This document shows, in pieces, positions 1-18,053 of a stretch of DNA of 64,000 bases; positions within the stretch are counted from its first letter, which is position 1, and each line of letters starts with the position of its first letter. The notes under the pieces are model-generated. The model saw only the letters and a list, made by a program, of their open reading frames with translations. It was not told where the DNA came from and ran no database searches. The translations under genes were made by a program, and so were the position numbers. Origin of the DNA: Guillardia theta CCMP2712 (Eukaryota > Protista > Cryptophyta); contig NW_005434673.1 of assembly GCF_000315625.1 (NCBI RefSeq), positions 1,003,650 to 1,067,649 on the forward strand, given 5' to 3'.

Positions 1-3000
1 TATAGCCCCCTTCACCGCTCCTCGAGCCTTTGAAGTATTCTCCCACTCCTCAATCATGGTCCTCGTCCTCTGCTGGATGTTCTCGTTGGATATCATCTCG
101 ACCAGCTCATTTAGGCCCATGAAAGCATCGATGCAACGTTTGAACATGTCGACCTTCCCGCTGAGAGCCTCTGCACGGCTCGCATCATCATGCACATACT
201 CGAAGTAGCTTCTCATCTCCTCGCATGTCCACCACTTCCCCCGGTACACATTGTGTATGGCCTCCACCTTGACAGAATCAGCAGCGCCCTTCCTTTGCAG
301 GCGGGAGAGGTCGACGAGCAGTTCCTTCCGTTGGTTCTCTGCCGGGCGCAACTTCTTGATCCTCGGGCCCGAGTCCTCTTGCGTCATTTCACTGACTTCA
401 CTGTCATCATCGAAATCTTCATCATCGTCCTCATCATCCTCCTCATCATCCTCCTCATCATCGTCCTCATCCTCCTCCTCTACCTCTTTCTTCTCCTTTT
501 CTGGCTGTTTCTTCGCTTCCTGGGCTGGTTCCTTTGCACTTGCTGCATCCATTTTCGGCTTTTTGGTCCTTGTGTCCTTGACCACTTTCGGTTGAGCCTC
601 TTTCCTGGCAACGCTCTCTGATTTCATCTCGCCTTCCTTGTCTTCATCAACAACATTCATCCTCTCTGCATCATTGAAATCCTCTTCTCCTTCAATCTTG
701 TGAATTGCGTCTGATGTCAGGAAAAACTTCTTCCTATCTCTTCTCGTGATTGTCTTGTAGGTCATCCTTGCGGCCTTGAGCGGACCAATCAGAGGGAACA
801 ACACGGCTCCTCCTAACAGAGCAACGCTCCCCATGAGCACTTTAGACAGTCCCTTGACAGCAAGCATCGGGAGGTTCGTCGACGCTTTAGATGTCAGTCG
901 ACCGCCCTGGCGGGTCTGGCCTTGACCTGCCGCCAGCTCATCCTGCAAGTCCTGACCGAACAAGTCGATTCCTTGAAAGACGTGAATGTCCACATACGCT
1001 GAGTTTGATTTCACGGGCCCAAGGCTGCGAGCTATCAACTCCATCTCATGCTCATTCTGAGCCTGCACGAGCTCTTTCTCCTCCCTCGCCTTCTTCTGCG
1101 CCAAGAGCATCGCCTGCTGCAGCTGCATGTCCGTCAAGAACGCGGGGTCTTGCATCCAGGCGTTGTTGCGCAGGTAGAAGAGACTGTAACTCCCTTGTTT
1201 CGCGGTTCCACTGCGCGATCGAGCTGCTTGCATCCTCTTCCTGATGAAGGCGTGTACGATCTCGAGATGTACCAGAGACATGTTTTCTGGCATCTCTCGA
1301 ATCCAGTTGAACCTGTCATGCTCAAGATCTCCGTAGTCTCTGTAATATGCATCAGGCTGCCAGCCGTAACTGTCACCCAAGAGGTTCAGGAAGTAAGGGA
1401 AGCAGTTGTCAATCTCATCAAGATGAAACTTGAGCGCTCGTTTGTGATAGCACTCTGACTTGGAGACAGCATGCCTCAGGTCCACAGGGATGAAATGAGC
1501 TCGGAAGTCATGGAGGTATTCGTTCAGGGCAGGGAAGATTTCAGAGTGCAGGAAGTCTCTTTCCGGCTTCATATCATCCCAGTCACTGCTGATGTAGAAA
1601 TGAATGGCCTTGTAGCCGACCTGGTCCGAGTCTTCCAGCCTCTTGCCCTTGACGTCTTCGGGGATATAAATGTCGTTCATGTCCACTTGAAGGCTCATCA
1701 TCTTCCCGTGCACGGGGCCCTTGAGCGCGATGTCATCGATGACTCTCAGCATCTCGCACTTGGCGAGTTTGTCGGCTGAGCTCAACTTGCACAGGCGAAC
1801 GAACCTGCGAGCAAGCGCCTCTGGTTTCCAGACATCTTTTCCCATCATGTCGTCAAGGAAGAATATCTCAGCGACGCCTTCTAGGAGGTCGAACTTGTTC
1901 AAACTGATTCGGCTCTCAGGCAGATCAAGCAGGAAGGAGACCTCAGACCGCAGTTGCTGCATGGCGAACTTGCTCTCAGCTATCAAGCTCCGCCCTGGTT
2001 CGTTCTCTTCCTCCTCCTTGAGAAACTTGACCTCTACCGAGTAAGGAGCATGGCGCGAGCCTTGAGGCAGCCTCTTGTGCCGCGCAAGCTTGGTCAGGTC
2101 CTTGGAAACAATGGCCCTCCGCAAGCGCTTCTTGTTGATCTGAACGAGCTTCTCTCGCTCGAAATCAACATCCCAGTGCTTTCTTCTCATTATCTCCGCC
2201 GAATGCTCTTTTTCCCTCACGATCTGTCGCTTCAACATCGCTTTGAACCTCGGAAAGTGCTTGGCATAGCAGGTGTCGCCGTATTCCTTCACGGTCTTGC
2301 TCCCCCAGTGGTGATACCAGAAGTGATCGAGGTGGCATTGAATCGGCTTCGACAAGATCGAGAAAGGCTCTCCGCACTCTGCGCACCTGCCAGACATGTT
2401 CCTACTCTTTCTGAGATTGTTTTCTACCAGTTCTCGACGCAATTCACTCGCATAGTTTTGGTCATAAACTCTGCGCTTCTCCTGCTCAGCTTTCCACTCC
2501 AAATCAAGCTTGCTCAGGTGAGACTCTTCTCTCTCTTGCTCCATCCGTGAAGAGGTCGACTCGTACTCCAGTACAACTCCTGAAGACCCCAGGGAGTGAC
2601 GACGTTGAAGTTTGTACATAACCTTTGACTTCTTCATCCCGATCGACACGTCAGTGAAAGGCGTGTCCAAAGAAAGCGATTTGCTCCTCTTTCTCTGAGA
2701 TACGTGAAACTCCGGCAGAGTCTTTATCCGCATCTCTACGCACAACTCACCAACGGGATCAGATTCTGCAAGGTTGTACAGCAAGAGATTTTGAAGGACC
2801 TTGATGTTTGGTTTCAATTCTTTGAATGCAAAAGAGGCATTTCCAATCAAAGCGTTTGTTCTGATCAAGTCATAGTCCAGGACATCAAAACGAACAATGT
2901 CTTGTTTGTCCAACGAGTGAGCTTCAAACTCGAAGGACTCGTTGAAGTTCGGGTAGTTAGTCTTGAATCTGATTCCTGTCTTCAAGATCCTCTCCTTGAA

Positions 3001-5089
3001 CTCTACACTGACAAACGAATCGCAAAGCTGTTTGGTACCGAGAGGCTTCAACTCTTTCGCTGACAAGATCTTGACAGTGAAGATGGTGTCGGGAGGAAGG
3101 TCAGTTGGCTTCGGGACCAGAGATATCTCCAGGTATACTTCACCCTGGTATTCCGGGTGCAGGTAGTCCTTCAAAGGATACCACTTGCAAACTGTTTCTC
3201 CTACACTGAAGCCCAGGAGGTCGATATCCACTCGTCCGCACGAGTCGTCTTTAGATCCGAAGTCATGATCGAAGCATTCGATGCCCAACGACGTGTCCAT
3301 GGTACTCGAGCTTGTCGGGAAGACAAGGATTTCGTTCCAGCGAGGGTGCAGAGTCTTGAAGATGGTTGAAGTCTTCTTTGTCTGACCCTCGAACCTGGCG
3401 ATCACGTACGGGTCTGAAGTGCCGCCCCAGTCGAGAGCCGGGAGGTTCCTCGCTTCCGAGACTCGAATCCGAAGCTGAGAATCTGTATCTTGCTCGCTGA
3501 GCTTCTTGCGAATGGAGATCTGGATCTTTACCTCCGCTCTAGAATCGGGCAACTGGAAGTTTTCCAGGAGCAACCATCTCTCGTGCAGGTAGTTCAAGGG
3601 GAAGTCCAACAGGTTGAGAGCAGAAGTTCCAATCATCACATCCTTCCTCCATTCCATGTGGTCCATTCCTGTAACGACCAACGCACTGTCCAGCCGATCT
3701 TCGAACCCCTCGAAAACAAACGATTCGTTCCACTCAGGTCTGCTGTACAACCCCTGCTTGAATCGGACCTTGGTCTTCTGCACCCTCCCCTCGAACTCTA
3801 CTTTGAAGTAGGGGTCACATGAATCACTCCTCGCCCTCGGAGGCAGCTTCCTGGCCTCCAGGATGGTAACGCGGATGATGGTATCGAAGTCTTTTAACTC
3901 CCTCATCTTCTTGAGGCTGACCTGGACGTTGATCCTGCCGTAGAAGTCTACCTCCTCGTTCCTCCTCCTCTTCACCTGACTCGGGTCCCCGTCCTTGCTG
4001 AACTTCTGCAAGTCGTGCCATGTTCCACTCCCAACCCCGGCAAGGTTCTCATTCATCAGGTTGATTCGGCAGCTGCCAATCAAGATGTCTCCCAGGATGT
4101 TCTGGTGGAAGCAGTGGATCTCAACAAAGTCGTTGCTCACACTTGAGCTCTGTGCTGGGAACTCAAAGATCTGCCTCCACATTGGCTCTAGAGTGCGCGA
4201 CTTGACATCCGTCTTGAAGACTTGGCTCTTGTACTTGACGATGGCGTAGGAGTCGACAAATCCGTGGAAGCCCAACACGGGAAACTCTTGTCCCTGGATC
4301 AGATGCACAGACAGCAGGGAGTCCGGCTCGACCGGCTTTCTCTTCTCGAAGCACAAGGACACCTCCACCTCAGCTCGGACCTGAGGATCCGAAGGGTCCA
4401 GTATGATGTACCATGACACGATGGGCTCGGAGTCCAACACCATCTTGGAGATGTTGATGTTGCAGCCTCCCATGTACTGAGGGTCGTCCTCCTCCTCCCA
4501 GTCCCAGCACTGCAGCTGCAGCTCTTTCGTGTCTTGGATCTGATTTTCCTCATTGACGGTCCACACCGGGAACTCGAGCGTCTGGTTCCATTGAGGAGCG
4601 AGAGTTCTCATCCTCACTTCCGTCTTGAGGTCTCGTGCTCCCAGCCTGAACAGCAGGTACCTGCAGACACGTCGGGTCAACAGGAACAAGGTCGGTGACT
4701 GCGGAGGCTGCTCACGGATCGCTGAGCCCATCTTCATTGCGAGCAGGAAGATTTCTTGCTTGGATGGCAACAATGCTCAAGACCTTTTGCAATCAGCTCA
4801 GAGAGGTAGAGGCAGAAACTCAGTGCAAGGCTCACATATGGTGAGTCCGCGTCCGGATCGATAGGCTCTTCTTCGCCCTCCTTCTTCTGCTTCTGCCAGG
4901 ATCGCTTTGAGCTTTTACGTCGCAGCAGGACGAGGGAGGCAGGACAAGGCAAGACCAACAACAGGCAAAGATGAGGGAAGATAAGGGGAGGGGAGGAGAG
5001 GTCAGGGAAGGGGAGGTCAGGGGGAGACTGTCATGTACCTTCCTGCGGAAGACCGAGGAGAGGGCGGGAAGGGAAGCACCTCCCCCCAT
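1..5089 (-). CDS. Large multi-C2 (5 C2 domains) protein with degenerate Cys/His finger, DUF4062 (TEP1/NPHP3-like) domain and acidic tract; 3' end beyond left edge
   Basis: Manual minus-strand translation stays in one frame, with no stop seen, from ~4660 to position 1; the ORF track lists no such ORF, consistent with no in-window stop. C2 motifs include LRIRVSEARNLPALDWGGTSDPYV...ECFDHDFGSKDD, VHLIQGQEFPVLGFHGFVDSY and VTILEARKLPPRARSDSCDPYF. DUF4062-like IHFYISSDWDDMKPERDFLHSEIFPALNEY..FIPVDLR..LDEIDNCFPYFLNLLGDSYGW at ~1605-1355. Short 5' exons upstream, proposed start MGGGASLP at 5089. Confidence 0.85.
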
Positions 5090-5357
5090 CTCGCCTACGG
5101 CATTGCTACCGCTATCGCCCCGCCGTCGGAGTGAGGCAGACCCGCGAAATGAGAACGGGACTGTAAAAGAAAGAAAGACAAAAAAGAACGGACCCGTTGT
5201 ATTCCAACAGTTGAACTTCACGTGTAAGTTGAGGAATCACTTGTAAGTGCTTGAACTTCTTTACTTGTAAGTAGTTTAGACTTGCACCTGCTACTTGCGA
5301 ATGGTGGTCATAAGGCTGGTAACGGTTACTAGGATTGCAGTTTCGAGTGCTCCGGTC

Positions 5358-5380
5358 ATTTAGGTTAGGGTTTAGGTTTT
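5358..5380 (-). promoter_or_regulatory. Telo-box-like / degenerate interstitial telomeric motif upstream of the C2 gene
   Basis: TTTAGGTTAGGGTTTAGGTTTT on the + strand contains AAACCCTA on the - strand, ~270 bp upstream of the proposed ATG. Confidence 0.3.
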
Positions 5381-5507
5381 AGAGGCGCCTCTACCTTTGT
5401 ATCATATCTGTTCAGGACAAAATTCGTCGAATTCTACTTGTGACTTGACCGCAACAGCCTAACTGTTGAGCTTCGGAAGATTCAAAGAGTGTGAGTTACG
5501 ATTTAAG

Positions 5508-6773
5508 TTAATGCATCAATTCATTCAACTCATTCAATTCTACTCGTTGCACTCGTGGCCATGCTGCAACCTGCCACCATGACATCACATCCTCTATCGG
5601 AAATCTCACTGTCAGAGAGCGCATGCATCCTCACCGACGCCTTCTGCCCCGGCGTACTGTATCCCCATGAGGCGAAGTACACGTTCACGCGCGAAGAGAG
5701 GAAAAGATCCGAAACAACCTGCCAGTCTCTCAGACAGGAATGAGTTGCTAGCTCGACTTCACATTCTTGATCACTCCTGCGTTGTCATCGAAGTAATGCA
5801 GGCGGTGCTCTGTGTTTGCAAAAATCAACGTAAAGGTAAGAAAGACTTGCAAGGCCGTACCCGGATATTCTTTTGCAATTTCAGACAATGCCTGAACCTA
5901 AAGGACGCCCGTCAGATCAAACAAGGAAGATACAACCTGCACCTTTGTGTCCTGCGATACTTTCACGACTCTGCTTCGCTCCAGCTCGACCCCTGATCTT
6001 TTCAACACCGAGTTGGTGAAATCTTGTTCATTGCTGGTTAGGACGTAAATTTTATCCCCGAAGCTTCTCAAAGCTATGTCAATCCCAGGATACAGAGGGT
6101 TTTTCTCCATCCAATGAACGATGTCGTCTTGTCCAGCAGCCTCCTGTGCTGTGAAGGTGCTGAGCAGGTCGTTCTTTTTGCACTGGTACTTGTGCAACAG
6201 CACGTCTCTCATGAAATCCCAATTTTCAACCATCTCTCCTGCTGACAATGGCCGCTCTCCTGAGGGCGACCGCTTGGCTGTTACGGCTTCAGACACGCAG
6301 AGTCTTGCGGCAAGAACCAGGTCTGCAGGGTCCGAAGCTACGGGCCTCAGTTGCTTCAACTTCTCCTCTAGCCACCTTGGAACATGACCTCCTTCATCAG
6401 CCTCATACTGGCTCCAGTCATAGCCCACCCAACTCTTCCTCACGCCAGCATCCCTTGCGCTCAGATAGGCGCACTCCTGCATGGTTTCAGGCCAAAGCTG
6501 TCTGGCAGCGAGGACTGCGGTTTCAACGTAGTTTGAGACAGTGTTGCAAAGGACTCCATCGAAGTCGAACACGTAAACACTTTGCTCCTGAGCATCACAT
6601 CTCAACGAAAAACTTCCTTCCCTCACTCTTCCACGACTTCTTCCTGGATTGAAGGAGTTGTGTCCTAAAAGTTTCCGTGGCCAACCTGTCCCGCCCGCGG
6701 CAACAAAGCCATTCACACTGACGATAGAGCAGCAACCCGTAAGCAGCAACAGAGCAAGCCCAGCATATCTCAT
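5508..6773 (-). CDS. Plastid-targeted HAD-superfamily hydrolase (cyanobacterial/plant-like)
   Basis: HAD motif I VYVFDFDGVLCNT; hydrophobic signal peptide MRYAGLALLLLTGCCSIVSVNG|F followed by an R/S-rich transit peptide; 3' exons VYFASWGYSTPGQK and VAAWPRVQRVELNELNELMH*. Confidence 0.85.
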
Positions 6774-7166
6774 CCTCGCTCCTCTTCTCCATGCTCGTCC
6801 CCCATTCCCTCTCCTTCCTTCCACACCGCCATTGCCAGGCACCCCCGTCATCGCAATCCTTGTAACAAGCAAGCTTCAAATCCGGGTCCGCCTCAGCCGG
6901 ACCCGCACACTGAAAACAGTCACACTAGTAGTCAAGTTAAGTTAAAGTAGTCCGGTTCAATTCAGTGAACGCGGCGGCCCGGCCGCCGACCGTCCGGGCC
7001 CGGCAGTTTCACACCGGACCTCGGAGTCAGGGAATGCAGCACTGCAGGCATCGAGCCGATGGAGTCAATGTGTGAGTCACAATCATGACAAACTTGCAAT
7101 ATGATTGCCGGAGGCCCGGGCAACGTCGTGCCAATGTAATACGGTTGTATATACTTGTGTCACTAA

Positions 7167-7238
7167 GCGTTCGTAGTGTAGTGGTTAGCACATCAGCCTT
7201 CCAAGCTGGTGGCCCGGGTTCGAGTCCCGGCGATCGCA
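7167..7238 (+). tRNA. tRNA-Gly (anticodon TCC)
   Basis: Cloverleaf: GCGTTCG acceptor arm, D arm GTGT-AGTGGTTA-GCAC, anticodon arm TCAGC-CTTCCAA-GCTGG, T arm CCGGG-TTCGAGT-CCCGG, discriminator A; followed by a TTCTTTTT Pol III terminator. Confidence 0.95.
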
Positions 7239-14677: not shown

Positions 14678-16231
14678 ATGGTAGGGCGAACAGTCCTATT
14701 GGTCACCGTGGCATTAGTTTTGCTACCCACAAGGTGATAAATCAAGTTCCTTGTACACAAGAACCATGTTCTCTGGATCGAGTTGTTGTATCAAAAGCTC
14801 TTTGTACTCTGTCTTCCGTGCATCACCGCGCAAGGAACTTCAGTGAAAGGTTTTGCAGCTCTGGATTCCAGACTCGGGCGGGGTTTGCCAACAATGCAAT
14901 CAGGACCCATCGATGTGAGAACTTTGTGATTGAACGATTGAACGTGACTTGCAGTTGTAGCGTTGTGCTCTGCCGCTGCCAGGAATATCCGCATGGGGCT
15001 ATTCGACTTCCTGAAGCCTGTAGAAGACTCCCTCCCTCTAGTTTCTTCTGATCTCTTGGCTCGCAGCAAGAACAGCAGCGACCGTCGAGTCCCGACGGGC
15101 CATGGAAGGTGTAGGAGGAGCCAGGGGCTCAACATGTCTGAGCAGCCTCACTCGCAGAAGCTGCTGGACGAGGAGACGGGAAAGAACTACTTCTGGAACA
15201 CTGAGACCGGTTGTTCGTCCCCTCCCGCTCCTCCAGTGCTGACCGAGCGAGCAGGAGAGACGACGTGGGACAGTCCGTTGGTGGAGAAGACAGGTACCCA
15301 TGATAGATCCATATCCTCTCCTCGACTCTCCCGTTTCATCCTCGTCTGATGCTGTCTCTGATCGGTTACAGCAACACTTGAAGTGAACAAATTCCGACAA
15401 GTCAAACGTTTGACATTCTCAACCGTCCCACTAGTCAACTTGACCTTCCGGCAGGTGACACACGGCAGACAGAAGCTCTGCCGTTCCCTGTGGACTTGCT
15501 AGCGGGAACATACCTTGAGGGCAGGCAGCTTTCATGTATCTTCCAGGCGTCTCGGGACGGGTCTGTGAAGCTGACGAGAGTGCTGGTCTGCTGATCGCCT
15601 GTAGATGGTCAGCGAGCAAGTTCCATTCCTTGTGCGACAACAGGGGTCCTTGCGTCGTCTACTGCGAGGTCTTCCATGAGTCTACCCGGCGCCCCTGCCC
15701 GCATGCTGACGGACTTGACGAGCAGACGGAGCAGGGGAGCAGGTTCGGAGCCTTCAACCCTGATGGATGGTGCTCCGACGACGACTGTCTGCCCAACTTG
15801 CATCCTCCTCCGATCCTGACCGGGAGCATGCAGATCGCTACAACCTCAACACCTTCCTCTTCTTCTGGCCGGCAAAGGTGCGTCCTCCTCCCGCTGCTTC
15901 TCTCTCGTCAGACCCTCCACCAGGATGGTGCGGGTCCTGTCAAGCTGCCCAAGGTGGGAGGAGGAGACACAGCGCTCTTCGATTATGCTCGGTCTGGGCC
16001 TCACTTCGGTGCCGATGGACTCGTTATCGGTGTGAGCTCCTCCTTCTCCTCCTCCTCCTGCTCTCTGAAGTTACAGCTCACCTTGATGTCGCAGGAGCGG
16101 GACAAGCTGCTGTCACCGGTCTGTTTGCAGGGCCAGACTTCAGCGATAGTGACAAGACGCAAGGACAACTGAAGGTGAGTATGGAGGAAAGACCGCATGG
16201 AATGGCGACGATGCGAAGAGGGACTTGGGGA

Positions 16232-16285
<54 letters not shown>

Positions 16286-16690
16286 GGCAGGAGCAGGAGC
16301 AGGGGCAGGGGCAGGGGCAGGGGCAGGGGCAGGGGCAGGGGCAGAAGGCTGAATAGGATCATGCAGGATGTCATTTCCCGGCTTGGACAGAGTTACGCGA
16401 GGATCCCGAAGGAGTGAGACCAGCGGAAGAGCTGATTGCTCCTGCGCATGCTCACCCTGCTCCTAAGGTTCGGTCAGACGAGCATTCTAGGAGGCGACCG
16501 CGAGAGCGCCCGACTTGCCGAAATGAAGGTGCGTCCTGCTTGCAGCCATCATGCGATGATGGGAGGAAGAACAGGTTTACGCAGCCCCAGAGCTCTTCTG
16601 ATTCAGATTTGTACATAAAGCTTGCCTTCTACACCGTCTCTCTGCTGCCGCCGCCGCCGGCTCACTCCTGCTCGGACTCCTGATAATCCT
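14678..16690 (+). CDS. WW-domain + TLDc-domain protein, possibly with signal peptide (ends uncertain)
   Basis: WW-like LLDEETGKNYFWNTETG/ETTWDSP; TLDc motifs WSASKFHSLCDNRGPCVVYCE, FGAFNPDGW, TFLFFWP, DYARSGPHFGADGLVIG; hydrophobic MVGRTVLLVTVALVLLP at 14678. Confidence 0.75.
16232..16345. repeat. Intronic hexamer microsatellite (AGCAGG/GGCAGG)n
   Basis: Directly visible tandem array. Confidence 0.9.
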
Positions 16691-16734
16691 ACTGCTTCGG
16701 ATACAACCTCCTCCTCTTCCTCCTCCCTCCCTCC

Positions 16735-17370
16735 NNNNNNNNNNNNNNNNNNNNNNNNNNNNNNNNNNNNNNNNNNNNNNNNNNNNNNNNNNNNNNNNNN
16801 NNNNNNNNNNNNNNNNNNNNNNNNNNNNNNNNNNNNNNNNNNNNNNNNNNNNNNNNNNNNNNNNNNNNNNNNNNNNNNNNNNNNNNNNNNNNNNNNNNNN
16901 NNNNNNNNNNNNNNNNNNNNNNNNNNNNNNNNNNNNNNNNNNNNNNNNNNNNNNNNNNNNNNNNNNNNNNNNNNNNNNNNNNNNNNNNNNNNNNNNNNNN
17001 NNNNNNNNNNNNNNNNNNNNNNNNNNNNNNNNNNNNNNNNNNNNNNNNNNNNNNNNNNNNNNNNNNNNNNNNNNNNNNNNNNNNNNNNNNNNNNNNNNNN
17101 NNNNNNNNNNNNNNNNNNNNNNNNNNNNNNNNNNNNNNNNNNNNNNNNNNNNNNNNNNNNNNNNNNNNNNNNNNNNNNNNNNNNNNNNNNNNNNNNNNNN
17201 NNNNNNNNNNNNNNNNNNNNNNNNNNNNNNNNNNNNNNNNNNNNNNNNNNNNNNNNNNNNNNNNNNNNNNNNNNNNNNNNNNNNNNNNNNNNNNNNNNNN
17301 NNNNNNNNNNNNNNNNNNNNNNNNNNNNNNNNNNNNNNNNNNNNNNNNNNNNNNNNNNNNNNNNNNNNNN
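16735..17370. other. Assembly gap (N run)
   Basis: Run of N flanked by pyrimidine microsatellites. Confidence 1.
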
Positions 17371-17559
17371 TAGGCCAACTTCCCCCTCCTCTCCTCTCCC
17401 TCTCCTCTCCTCTCCTCTCCTCTCCTCTCCTCTCCTCTCCTCTCCTCTCCTCTCTTCCTCTCTCTCTCTCCTCTTCTTCTCCTCTTGTCTCCCTTCCCCT
17501 CTGTCTCCCCTTCTTCCTTCTCTTCTTCTCCTTTCCTCCTCCTATCATATTCTATCGAC

Positions 17560-18053
17560 GTGAACTTACGATGCTGATCCAGGCAGCTTGCACTGTCCGA
17601 CGACCTGAAGAGAGCATACAGCCATGTGAACCCCTCCCCCCTCCCCTCGCCTCCCTCGCCTCCCCTACGCCCCCCCCCTCTCCCCCCCCCCTCTCTTGAC
17701 TTCCCTGCATTCCTCCTCCTGTGAATTGACCAATTCTTCAGATCCTGATGTCCAAGTCATCGAGACGAGGGGCAAGGGGAGAGGGCTGCAGGCTGCATGC
17801 GCCATCAGCAAGGGGACGATTGTTTGCGAGTACCTTGGAGAGATTTTGCCGATGCATGAAGCAAGAAAGCGACAGAAGTTGCCTGTGAGCTTGCTGATCT
17901 TGCCGACCATGACATGTTGTAGGAGGTATGATGAGATGACACCTCCGTTGAATTATGTCTACGTGCTCAGGGAGATCTTCATTCGAGGAGGTATGCCTTA
18001 CATCTCTCCATCTACTCTTCCTCCTTTTCTGCTTCCTCCTCGTCCTCCTCGTC

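Follow-up and report, generated by a model that had tools for sequence, protein, structure and literature searches.

The left edge of a 64,000-nt stretch of the Guillardia theta CCMP2712 genome (contig NW_005434673.1; the whole stretch is called "the window" below) raises a question: what is encoded by a minus-strand reading frame that joins tandem C2 domains to a DUF4062-like block and runs off the end of the stretch? A preliminary description of this DNA had proposed a membrane-targeted STAND/NLR-like receptor. Our analysis favors, with a probability that we place at roughly 80%, one giant, transcribed STAND protein of the TEP1/NWD type, in which an N-terminal membrane-targeting arm precedes a split effector domain and for which a mechanism of activation can be proposed.

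Window positions 1-5089 on the minus strand encode residues 1-1,612 of this protein; all features of the gene lie on that strand, and their coordinates are those of the window unless another sequence is named. The frame 4776..1 comprises 1,592 codons without a stop. Because it continues past the window's left edge, it was missing from the list of open reading frames that accompanied the sequence. The ~4.6-kb exon that the preliminary description had nevertheless recognized is real: the frame is open, and exon 4 is unbroken over 1-4658. Flanking DNA was obtained from scaffold JH992965.1 of the same strain, entered via the loci of the neighboring gene and of an annotated 106-residue C2 fragment. 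Two flanking sequences, L003 and L004, which agree with the window at every position over 7 kb, added 4,493 and 6,838 nt leftwards, respectively. From position 4776, the same frame is stop-free for 3,871 codons, to the end of L004, and 3,891 residues can be read from the initiating ATG without reaching a stop. About 11.6 kb are open in one frame as one exon; leftwards of the window part (1..4658), this exon goes on for 6,838 nt or more without a stop. If G. theta genes are generally intron-rich, a single exon of this length would be unusual.

Is the frame transcribed as a unit? A single transcript had been predicted, and a spliced contig of 12,317 nt (X1; depth 263) indeed covers the gene, extends 7,607 nt past the left edge and, in its first record, spans 1-4658 without any joint. 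The coding part of exon 1 (5039..5089) begins with the ATG at 5089-5087 and encodes MGGGASLPALSSVFRRK; the 5' untranslated region reaches at least 5116, and between the preceding stop and this codon no other ATG is in frame. Exon 2 (4834..4892), exon 3 (4714..4781, as defined by spliced contigs) and exon 4 are set apart by intron 1 (4893..5038; 146 nt, GT..AG), intron 2 (4782..4833; 52 nt) and intron 3 (4659..4713; 55 nt), the last two being GT..AG when the cut is moved by 2. With these three introns removed, the protein starts MGGGASLPALSSVFRRKKQKK, and its ATG falls exactly on 5089, the end coordinate that had been assigned to the gene. The joint of intron 1 occurs in both X1 and X2, contigs from two separate studies; when public runs were mapped to window positions 1-6000, X2 displayed the same GT..AG joints as X1. 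Contigs from a third study (X6) represent unspliced genomic DNA and are identical to the window. Because a related environmental contig (L001) runs ~235 residues further than the retrieved G. theta sequence and ~769 nt of transcript remain, we estimate from the sequences that the full protein has about 4,100 residues and the gene about 12.6 kb. The reference annotation of the gene consists of the 106-residue fragment, which covers the fourth C2 domain (L003 13294-13611, equal to window 3163-3480), and a model of 284 residues from the WD40 region (L004 18980-20318); the remainder is unannotated. Surveys of protist STAND/NLR proteins that used the G. theta reference proteome will have missed this gene.

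Sequence comparison places the homology of the DUF4062 block to its family beyond doubt. The Pfam model (PF13271) matches residues 1061-1142 of the open reading frame (window 1351-1596; E 1.5e-4), very near the region (~1605-1355) originally designated DUF4062-like, at a sub-threshold 22.3 bits, and a phmmer search against solved structures had a sole match, the TIR-like domain of human TEP1 (11gz_A, E 3.9e-15). Exhaustive searching returned 5,150 proteins at E<=1e-3, of which 996 reached E<=1e-10; almost all of them align at this block, which matches the N-termini of hundreds of proteins of 1,000-2,000 residues at E 1e-15 to 1e-19. The canonical matches that were scanned contain DUF4062 (48-56 bits), NACHT, HTH_NWD1 and APAF1_C. 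A word-based protein search with residues 1000-1592 found one TEP1-like match; this low yield probably reflects crowding of the candidate list by acidic low-complexity words and a length filter that the full-length protein exceeds. NCBIfam models applied to the C-terminal 600 residues gave noise only. The N-terminal two-thirds of the domain, βA-βD, occupy residues 1074-1225 (1162..1617); AlphaFold2 models them as four parallel strands with a predicted local distance difference test score (pLDDT) of 70-94. The top VIA-align rows for this part were TIR, nucleoside 2-deoxyribosyltransferase (NDT) and SEFIR folds (Z 6-7.6, below the tool's decisive level), and Foldseek returned nothing at E<=1e-3 from a PDB library that the TEP1 entry seems to postdate. 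Two of the sequence elements that had been called TEP1-like, SLVHLEI and SLFYLR (1165-1182), are true family motifs. A third, VYRGKWW..GLNELVE (window 1-324), is not: it belongs to an insertion module, described below, to which no canonical protein aligns. Canonical family members align up to about residue 1281, and the last part that does so is a long charged helix after βD (residues 1236-1268; 1033..1131).

A NACHT domain and repeats had been expected just left of the window. They are present in the same frame, with no stop before the P-loop NTPase, but they lie 3.8 kb off, behind an insertion of ~1,500 residues. A TEP1-like linker, VYKDYPCFYNGLDGEG...GLEDFG, starts at residue 2788, ~3.5 kb past the left edge. 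It is followed by a Walker A motif (GEAGCGKS) at residue 2887, 1,275 residues (3.8 kb) past the left edge, by a Walker B motif (VLIVLDS) at residue 3023, by helical domains of the NWD1/APAF-1-like type and, from ~residue 3448, by WD40 repeats (211 bits, seven stretches; TEP1 second propeller, 135 bits). The G, G, G and K of Walker A and the D of Walker B are invariant in alignment A1. Alignments of the NACHT region to proteins that clear the cut-offs of both PF05729 (NACHT) and DUF4062 have E values of 8e-21 to 1e-39, and some of these relatives also clear the cut-offs of HTH_NWD1 or APAF1_C. Searched alone against the PDB by sequence, the region had no matches and the A1 profile was needed; this profile matches the nucleotide-binding oligomerization domain (NOD) of APAF-1 at E 6e-10. 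An N-terminal effector, a central NOD and C-terminal repeats are thus held in one polypeptide, in one frame and on one transcript contig. These alignments place the protein in the TEP1/NWD clade of STAND proteins.

Is this protein peculiar to G. theta? The closest proteins (P0002-P0006) are 37-42% identical and all come from metagenomes; the best match in the exhaustive search was 37-40% identical, and the collection contained no G. theta copy. P0003 and P0004 have five C2 domains and DUF4062, and the more distant P0007 (E 1e-36) has three C2 stretches and DUF4062. Colinearity with the G. theta protein extends up to the WD40 part in two environmental contigs, L001 and L002 (23-42% identity), and includes the insertion. 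The protein family is conserved rather than an accident of G. theta. In L001 and L002, the gene is split into several same-strand reading frames in different frames, which suggests that it has more introns there than in G. theta. Among the best 150 matches of the exhaustive search, C2 arrays are confined to this small clade. Of the remaining proteins with N-terminal extensions, those scanned had TROVE/DUF5920 (TEP1 orthologues), HEAT repeats or nothing recognizable in that place, and in no case C2. Full-text searches of a literature library found no description of the 5xC2-DUF4062-NACHT-WD40 combination, which the preliminary description had not recognized among described proteins either. An NLR whose N-terminal effector is a C2 domain is, by contrast, already known from a few basidiomycetes.

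The protein begins MGGGAS, with Gly2, Ser6 and a subsequent basic patch; this reads as a motif of the N-myristoylation type (Met-Gly-x-x-x-Ser). P0004 (MGAGAS) and P0007 (MGAAVS) have it at the same N-terminal position, and membrane targeting gains support from this shared MGxxxS and polybasic N-terminus. The five tandem C2 domains that had been reported were all recovered (PF00168; 279.3 bits, E 1.6e-84, in five stretches; cut-off 22), and the nearest solved domains to this region are those of myoferlin, dysferlin, otoferlin, synaptotagmins, MCTP2, E-Syt2 and PKC. C2-1 (residues 36-150; 4387..4838) begins within exon 2 at 4838, is broken by introns 2 and 3, and is completed by exons 2 and 3. 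C2-2 (residues 173-285; 3982..4320), C2-3 (residues 319-435; 3532..3882), C2-4 (residues 453-565; 3142..3480), which is the best C2 match, and C2-5 (residues 584-700; 2737..3087) follow within exon 4.

Ca2+-binding C2 domains coordinate the ion through five acidic ligands of loops 1 and 3, which in the C2A domain of synaptotagmin-1 are D172, D178, D230, D232 and D238. In the domain alignment, C2-4 is the only one of the five in-window domains with the full set (D,D,D,D,D), and P0003 and P0004 have the same set in C2-4. The others have Asp at one to three of the five ligand positions: N,D,D,E,Q in C2-1, G,D,H,N,L in C2-2, A,D,D,M,V in C2-3 and G,D,D,D,A in C2-5; all four are degenerate. Hence, of the Ca2+/lipid sensing that had been suggested for the array, Ca2+ sensing in the window part is plausible for C2-4, but not for its four degenerate neighbors.

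Between the C2 array and the DUF4062 block, residues 720-1050 are conserved in the clade (alignment A3). They include a conserved Cys/His cluster, GRCAECGE...C..H...C..H (2263..2394), which AlphaFold2 models as a small β knuckle between two long helices (pLDDT 71) and which, going by this model, may bind zinc. Residues 932-1041 (1714..2043) are modeled as a ferredoxin-like domain with β-α-β-β-α-β order. The middle region alone had no sequence match in the PDB. No family, and no PDB match by sequence or fold, was found for the knuckle region, and for the ferredoxin-like domain the Foldseek rows were weak (E >= 0.02).

Could the DUF4062 block be an enzyme? In two preprints of 2026, DUF4062 (TeTIR) was shown to be a TIR-like NADase domain with defined key residues (10.64898/2026.05.01.722283; 10.64898/2026.09.21.753143), and mutating any one of six residues of TEP1 (F902, R914, R942, C959, R976 and E1008) abolishes its NADase activity (10.64898/2026.09.21.753143). 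R908, R954, R976 and E1008 served to anchor the numbering of the crystal chain. The catalytic Glu, E1008 in TEP1, corresponds to Glu1192 of the G. theta protein (in HLEIV; 1261-1263) and is invariant in 50 of 50 sequences; R914 and R942 are retained, and F902 is conservatively replaced by Tyr. The remaining positions are altered and are considered below.

The TIR-like domain has a further peculiarity: it is interrupted. TeTIR domains comprise 200-350 residues, lie "invariably directly upstream of the NACHT" and carry extra helices between βD and αD (10.64898/2026.09.21.753143). In 33 canonical relatives, the median distance from the end of the DUF4062 alignment to the start of the linker/P-loop alignment is 35 residues; the same gap, between the TIR-like parts of the G. 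theta protein, is 1,567 residues. Chain residues 2-128 of the TEP1 crystal structure (11gz_A) match G. theta residues 1074-1206. On the other side, G. theta residues 2771-2822 by themselves match chain residues 160-211 (E 0.0018; the sole PDB match), and the A1 profile matches residues 141-216 at E 3.8e-15. Because the crystal construct matches both G. theta parts, the insertion sits after βD (FYLR) and before αD. The αD, β-hairpin and αE end of the domain adjoins the NACHT, and βA-βD lie ~1,567 residues upstream. At the sequence level, then, the TIR-like domain is split, and the rule of contiguity with the NACHT holds here for the last third of the domain only. Two other readings of these parts were rejected. 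An N-side stretch, AYVDIHVFQGIDLFG, was tried as βE/αE of a complete domain, but it is modeled at pLDDT 30-50 and the canonical hairpin aligns on the C-side; a decayed second DUF4062 before the NACHT was discarded because only ~50 residues separate the sixth C2 domain from αD.

The insertion spans residues ~1282-2753, of which the first 331 are encoded in the window (1..993); inside residues 1285-2745, none of 87 canonical DUF4062-NACHT proteins aligns. Near its start is a hydrophobic, Gly/Pro-rich segment, VLMGSVALLGGAVLFPLIG (784..840; Kyte-Doolittle 2.13 over 19 residues), which may insert into the membrane as a helix or hairpin; a comparable segment is present in P0002. A low-complexity stretch, first Lys/Glu-rich and then poly-Asp/Glu, follows at 331..558. 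The conserved helical YRGKWW module (residues 1505-1612; 1..324) is 40-43% identical in P0002, P0008 and P0012. In the ESM Atlas, the homologue P0008 gave template-modeling scores of at most 0.35 (query-normalized), and no fold was assignable to the module. Beyond the window edge, the insertion holds a sixth C2 domain (26.1 bits) and PH-like stretches. The latter are weak (17 bits in L001), and Pfam PH found nothing in the G. theta insertion itself; the designation as PH domains proper was therefore dropped in favor of "PH-like".

Two further features of the insertion were observed. At residues ~1858-1876 (in L004) lies a weaker hydrophobic stretch, RPCCCCSIPLLLMLFL, with four consecutive Cys, which could be a palmitoylation-type site. 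In addition, both edges of the insertion display similar elements, namely an FY(L)R or FLSLR strand and then a charged helix ending in ...V..Y, at residues 1219-1281 (window 994-1182) and 2753-2795 (L004 ~16901-17029). The first (aligned to P0039) and the second (aligned to P0065 and P0035) fall on one and the same part of canonical proteins, and they may be the trace of a partial duplication that arose with the insertion.

How might such a protein work? In the mechanism that we propose, the myristoyl-basic motif and the Ca2+-independent C2 domains would hold the protein at a membrane, and C2-4 would contribute Ca2+-dependent binding. The WD40 propellers would keep the NACHT off until a ligand binds; oligomerization of the NACHT would then cluster the TIR-like domains at the membrane. 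The output could be cleavage of NAD+ or a related nucleotide, or it could be scaffolding alone, as proposed for NPHP3-type proteins. The split itself invites a further suggestion: the halves of the catalytic domain, parted by a membrane-binding insertion, might form the active fold only once Ca2+/lipid binding or NACHT oligomerization joins them. We consider this improbable; if true, the split halves would constitute a new gating of a TIR-type nucleotide hydrolase at the membrane. A role in immunity or cell death may be conjectured from the analogy to TEP1, SARM1 and bacterial Swarozyc. To our knowledge, no STAND-based defense or death pathway has been described in this algal lineage.

Several observations weigh against the reading of the protein as a membrane-targeted STAND protein with a TIR-like effector. 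The score of the DUF4062 block (22.3 bits) is below the PF13271 gathering score (24.7), which the clade members P0003 (26.2 bits) and P0005 (27.6 bits) clear; that of the NACHT region is 19.9 bits against a cut-off of 26.7 for PF05729, and AAA_22, AAA_16 and NPHP3_N are likewise under their thresholds. The N-side AlphaFold2 model has only four strands and a poorly predicted tail. From a raw RNA-seq run (X11), of which 6% was sampled, only 17 reads were obtained, and the ~769 nt of transcript beyond the retrieved flanking DNA include the stop codon. Further objections concern the active site. The residue equivalent to C959 of TEP1 is His, as it is in five of five clade members, and that equivalent to R976 is Ser, a residue shared by four of the five clade members, although all 45 of the 45 canonical sequences have Arg there; W943 and R908 are replaced by His and Asp, respectively. 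Because C959H and R976S substitute residues that are essential in TEP1, an enzymatic output is doubtful, and we rate the chance that the output is nucleotide cleavage at only about one in three. The catalytic center is retained but remodeled, and its NADase activity is uncertain.

These same substitutions sustain the strongest alternative, which has the same architecture but a non-enzymatic TIR-like domain: the protein would be an NPHP3-like scaffold of the membrane or flagellum, with a housekeeping or trafficking role and not one in defense or death. G. theta is a flagellate, which we count in its favor, and long, colinear conservation at ~40% identity suits a conserved cellular function better than a fast-evolving receptor. 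C959H and R976S remove two residues essential in TEP1, and the RWG loop reads RHA (10.64898/2026.09.21.753143). Moreover, NWD1, NWD2 and NPHP3 display no NADase activity in vitro (10.64898/2026.05.01.722283), and NPHP3 is a myristoylated cargo of UNC119 (PMC8246649). NPHP3 has an N-terminal myristoylation site, for which our protein has a candidate motif, and resembles our protein in having a TeTIR-like domain beside an NTPase of the NACHT type; NPHP3 is a STAND scaffold targeted to a membrane or cilium (10.64898/2026.09.21.753143). The resemblance has limits, however. NPHP3 has lost the catalytic Glu (10.64898/2026.09.21.753143), which is present in five of five members of our clade, its repeats are TPR and not WD40, and it has neither C2 domains nor an insertion; the G. 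theta protein has no NPHP3-like TPR region. In addition, the Cys-to-His change is uniform across the clade, as in a remodeled rather than a decayed active site. We therefore hold the scaffold to be a serious, albeit less probable, explanation.

A second alternative makes the C2 array the working end. The protein would then be a Ca2+-regulated tether, or a fusion or repair factor, like ferlins or E-Syts, in which the STAND module gates assembly and the TIR-like domain is vestigial. The best solved matches of the C2 region, namely myoferlin, dysferlin, otoferlin, synaptotagmins, MCTP2 and E-Syt2, are consistent with this view, as are the six C2 domains, the PH-like stretches and the hydrophobic segment. 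For the N-terminal C2 domain of a few basidiomycete NLR candidates, moreover, the role of an effector that targets membranes has been suggested (Dyrka et al. 2014, PMC4986451). Yet a full Ca2+ site is present in only one of the six C2 domains; FerA, DysF, SMP and a C-terminal transmembrane anchor are absent from the parts seen; and the similarity to ferlins is limited to single C2 domains. We deem this explanation unlikely. Finally, the long frame might be an artefact of assembly or annotation, or a decaying fusion of a multi-C2 gene, filler and an NWD-like gene, as the fragmentary reference models (106 residues of C2 and 284 of WD40) and the low-complexity sequence of the insertion could suggest; this is highly improbable, given ~11.6 kb open in a single frame, one spliced contig that spans the gene, the same introns in two independent studies, identical genomic contigs in a third (X6) and two environmental relatives (~40% identity) with the same order of parts, insertion included.

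With the STAND protein of the TEP1/NWD type retained as the preferred reading, its likeness to known systems can be specified. It shares with TEP1, NWD1 and NWD2 the TIR-like catalytic Glu, the ERD and DLR motifs and the FY(F/L)R strand; the linker Y-P-C-x-Y/W...GLExFG; and the NACHT P-loop and Walker B motif, the NWD1-type helical region and WD40 repeats with the TEP1-type second propeller. It differs from them in lacking TROVE/VWA, in place of which it has the myristoylation motif, five C2 domains, the Cys/His knuckle and the ferredoxin-like domain. It differs as well in the ~1,500 residues between βD and αD, and in the replacement of C959, R976 and W943 in the active site. The basidiomycete C2-NLRs likewise place a lipid-binding C2 domain N-terminal to a STAND module (NACHT/NB-ARC) and repeats. 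This likeness is one of domain types: there, a single C2 domain is the only effector and DUF4062 is absent, whereas the G. theta protein has five plus one C2 domains and a TIR-like domain. Ferlins, MCTPs and extended synaptotagmins likewise have C2 domains in tandem, only some of which bind Ca2+ in those proteins, and they supply the best sequence matches of the individual C2 domains; they have no STAND module, and the G. theta protein has no SMP, FerA or DysF domain and no terminal transmembrane anchor in the parts seen. Bacterial Swarozyc and plant TNLs also couple a TIR-type effector to a sensing or oligomerizing module, and clustering is the proposed means of their activation. Swarozyc, composed of DUF4062 and an auxiliary domain, has other sensor modules, no NACHT and no membrane arm; plant TNLs have a canonical TIR, NB-ARC and LRR, and no membrane arm.

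If the preferred reading is correct, this cryptophyte protein and its environmental relatives indicate that the TEP1/NWD1/NWD2 module can be coupled to a large arm for membrane targeting, and membranes and Ca2+ become a possible site or input of activation for TeTIR-NACHT-WD40 proteins. The protein would also be an exception to the rule of TeTIR-NACHT contiguity, with ~1,500 residues, whole domains among them, lodged in a loop of the TIR-like fold. With Glu kept, Cys changed to His and Arg to Ser, its active site offers a natural test case for the residues that set substrate choice in TeTIR domains.

Some features of the adjoining DNA were also recorded. The product of the neighboring gene (window 5400-6872, minus strand) is 100% identical to GUITHDRAFT_131635, a HAD-superfamily hydrolase of 370 residues; its start, MRYAGLALLLLTGCC, is signal-peptide-like, and an orthologue in Hanusia phi is 74% identical. 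Transcript contigs reveal at least four very short introns (44-64 nt) in this gene, at 5569-5632, 5717-5760, 5810-5860 and 5896-5940. A tRNA-Gly gene (anticodon TCC) lies on the plus strand at window 7167-7238, between the HAD gene and the next gene. Further along, window positions 16001-18000 have a G+C content of 0.39, compared with 0.50-0.57 in the rest of the window.

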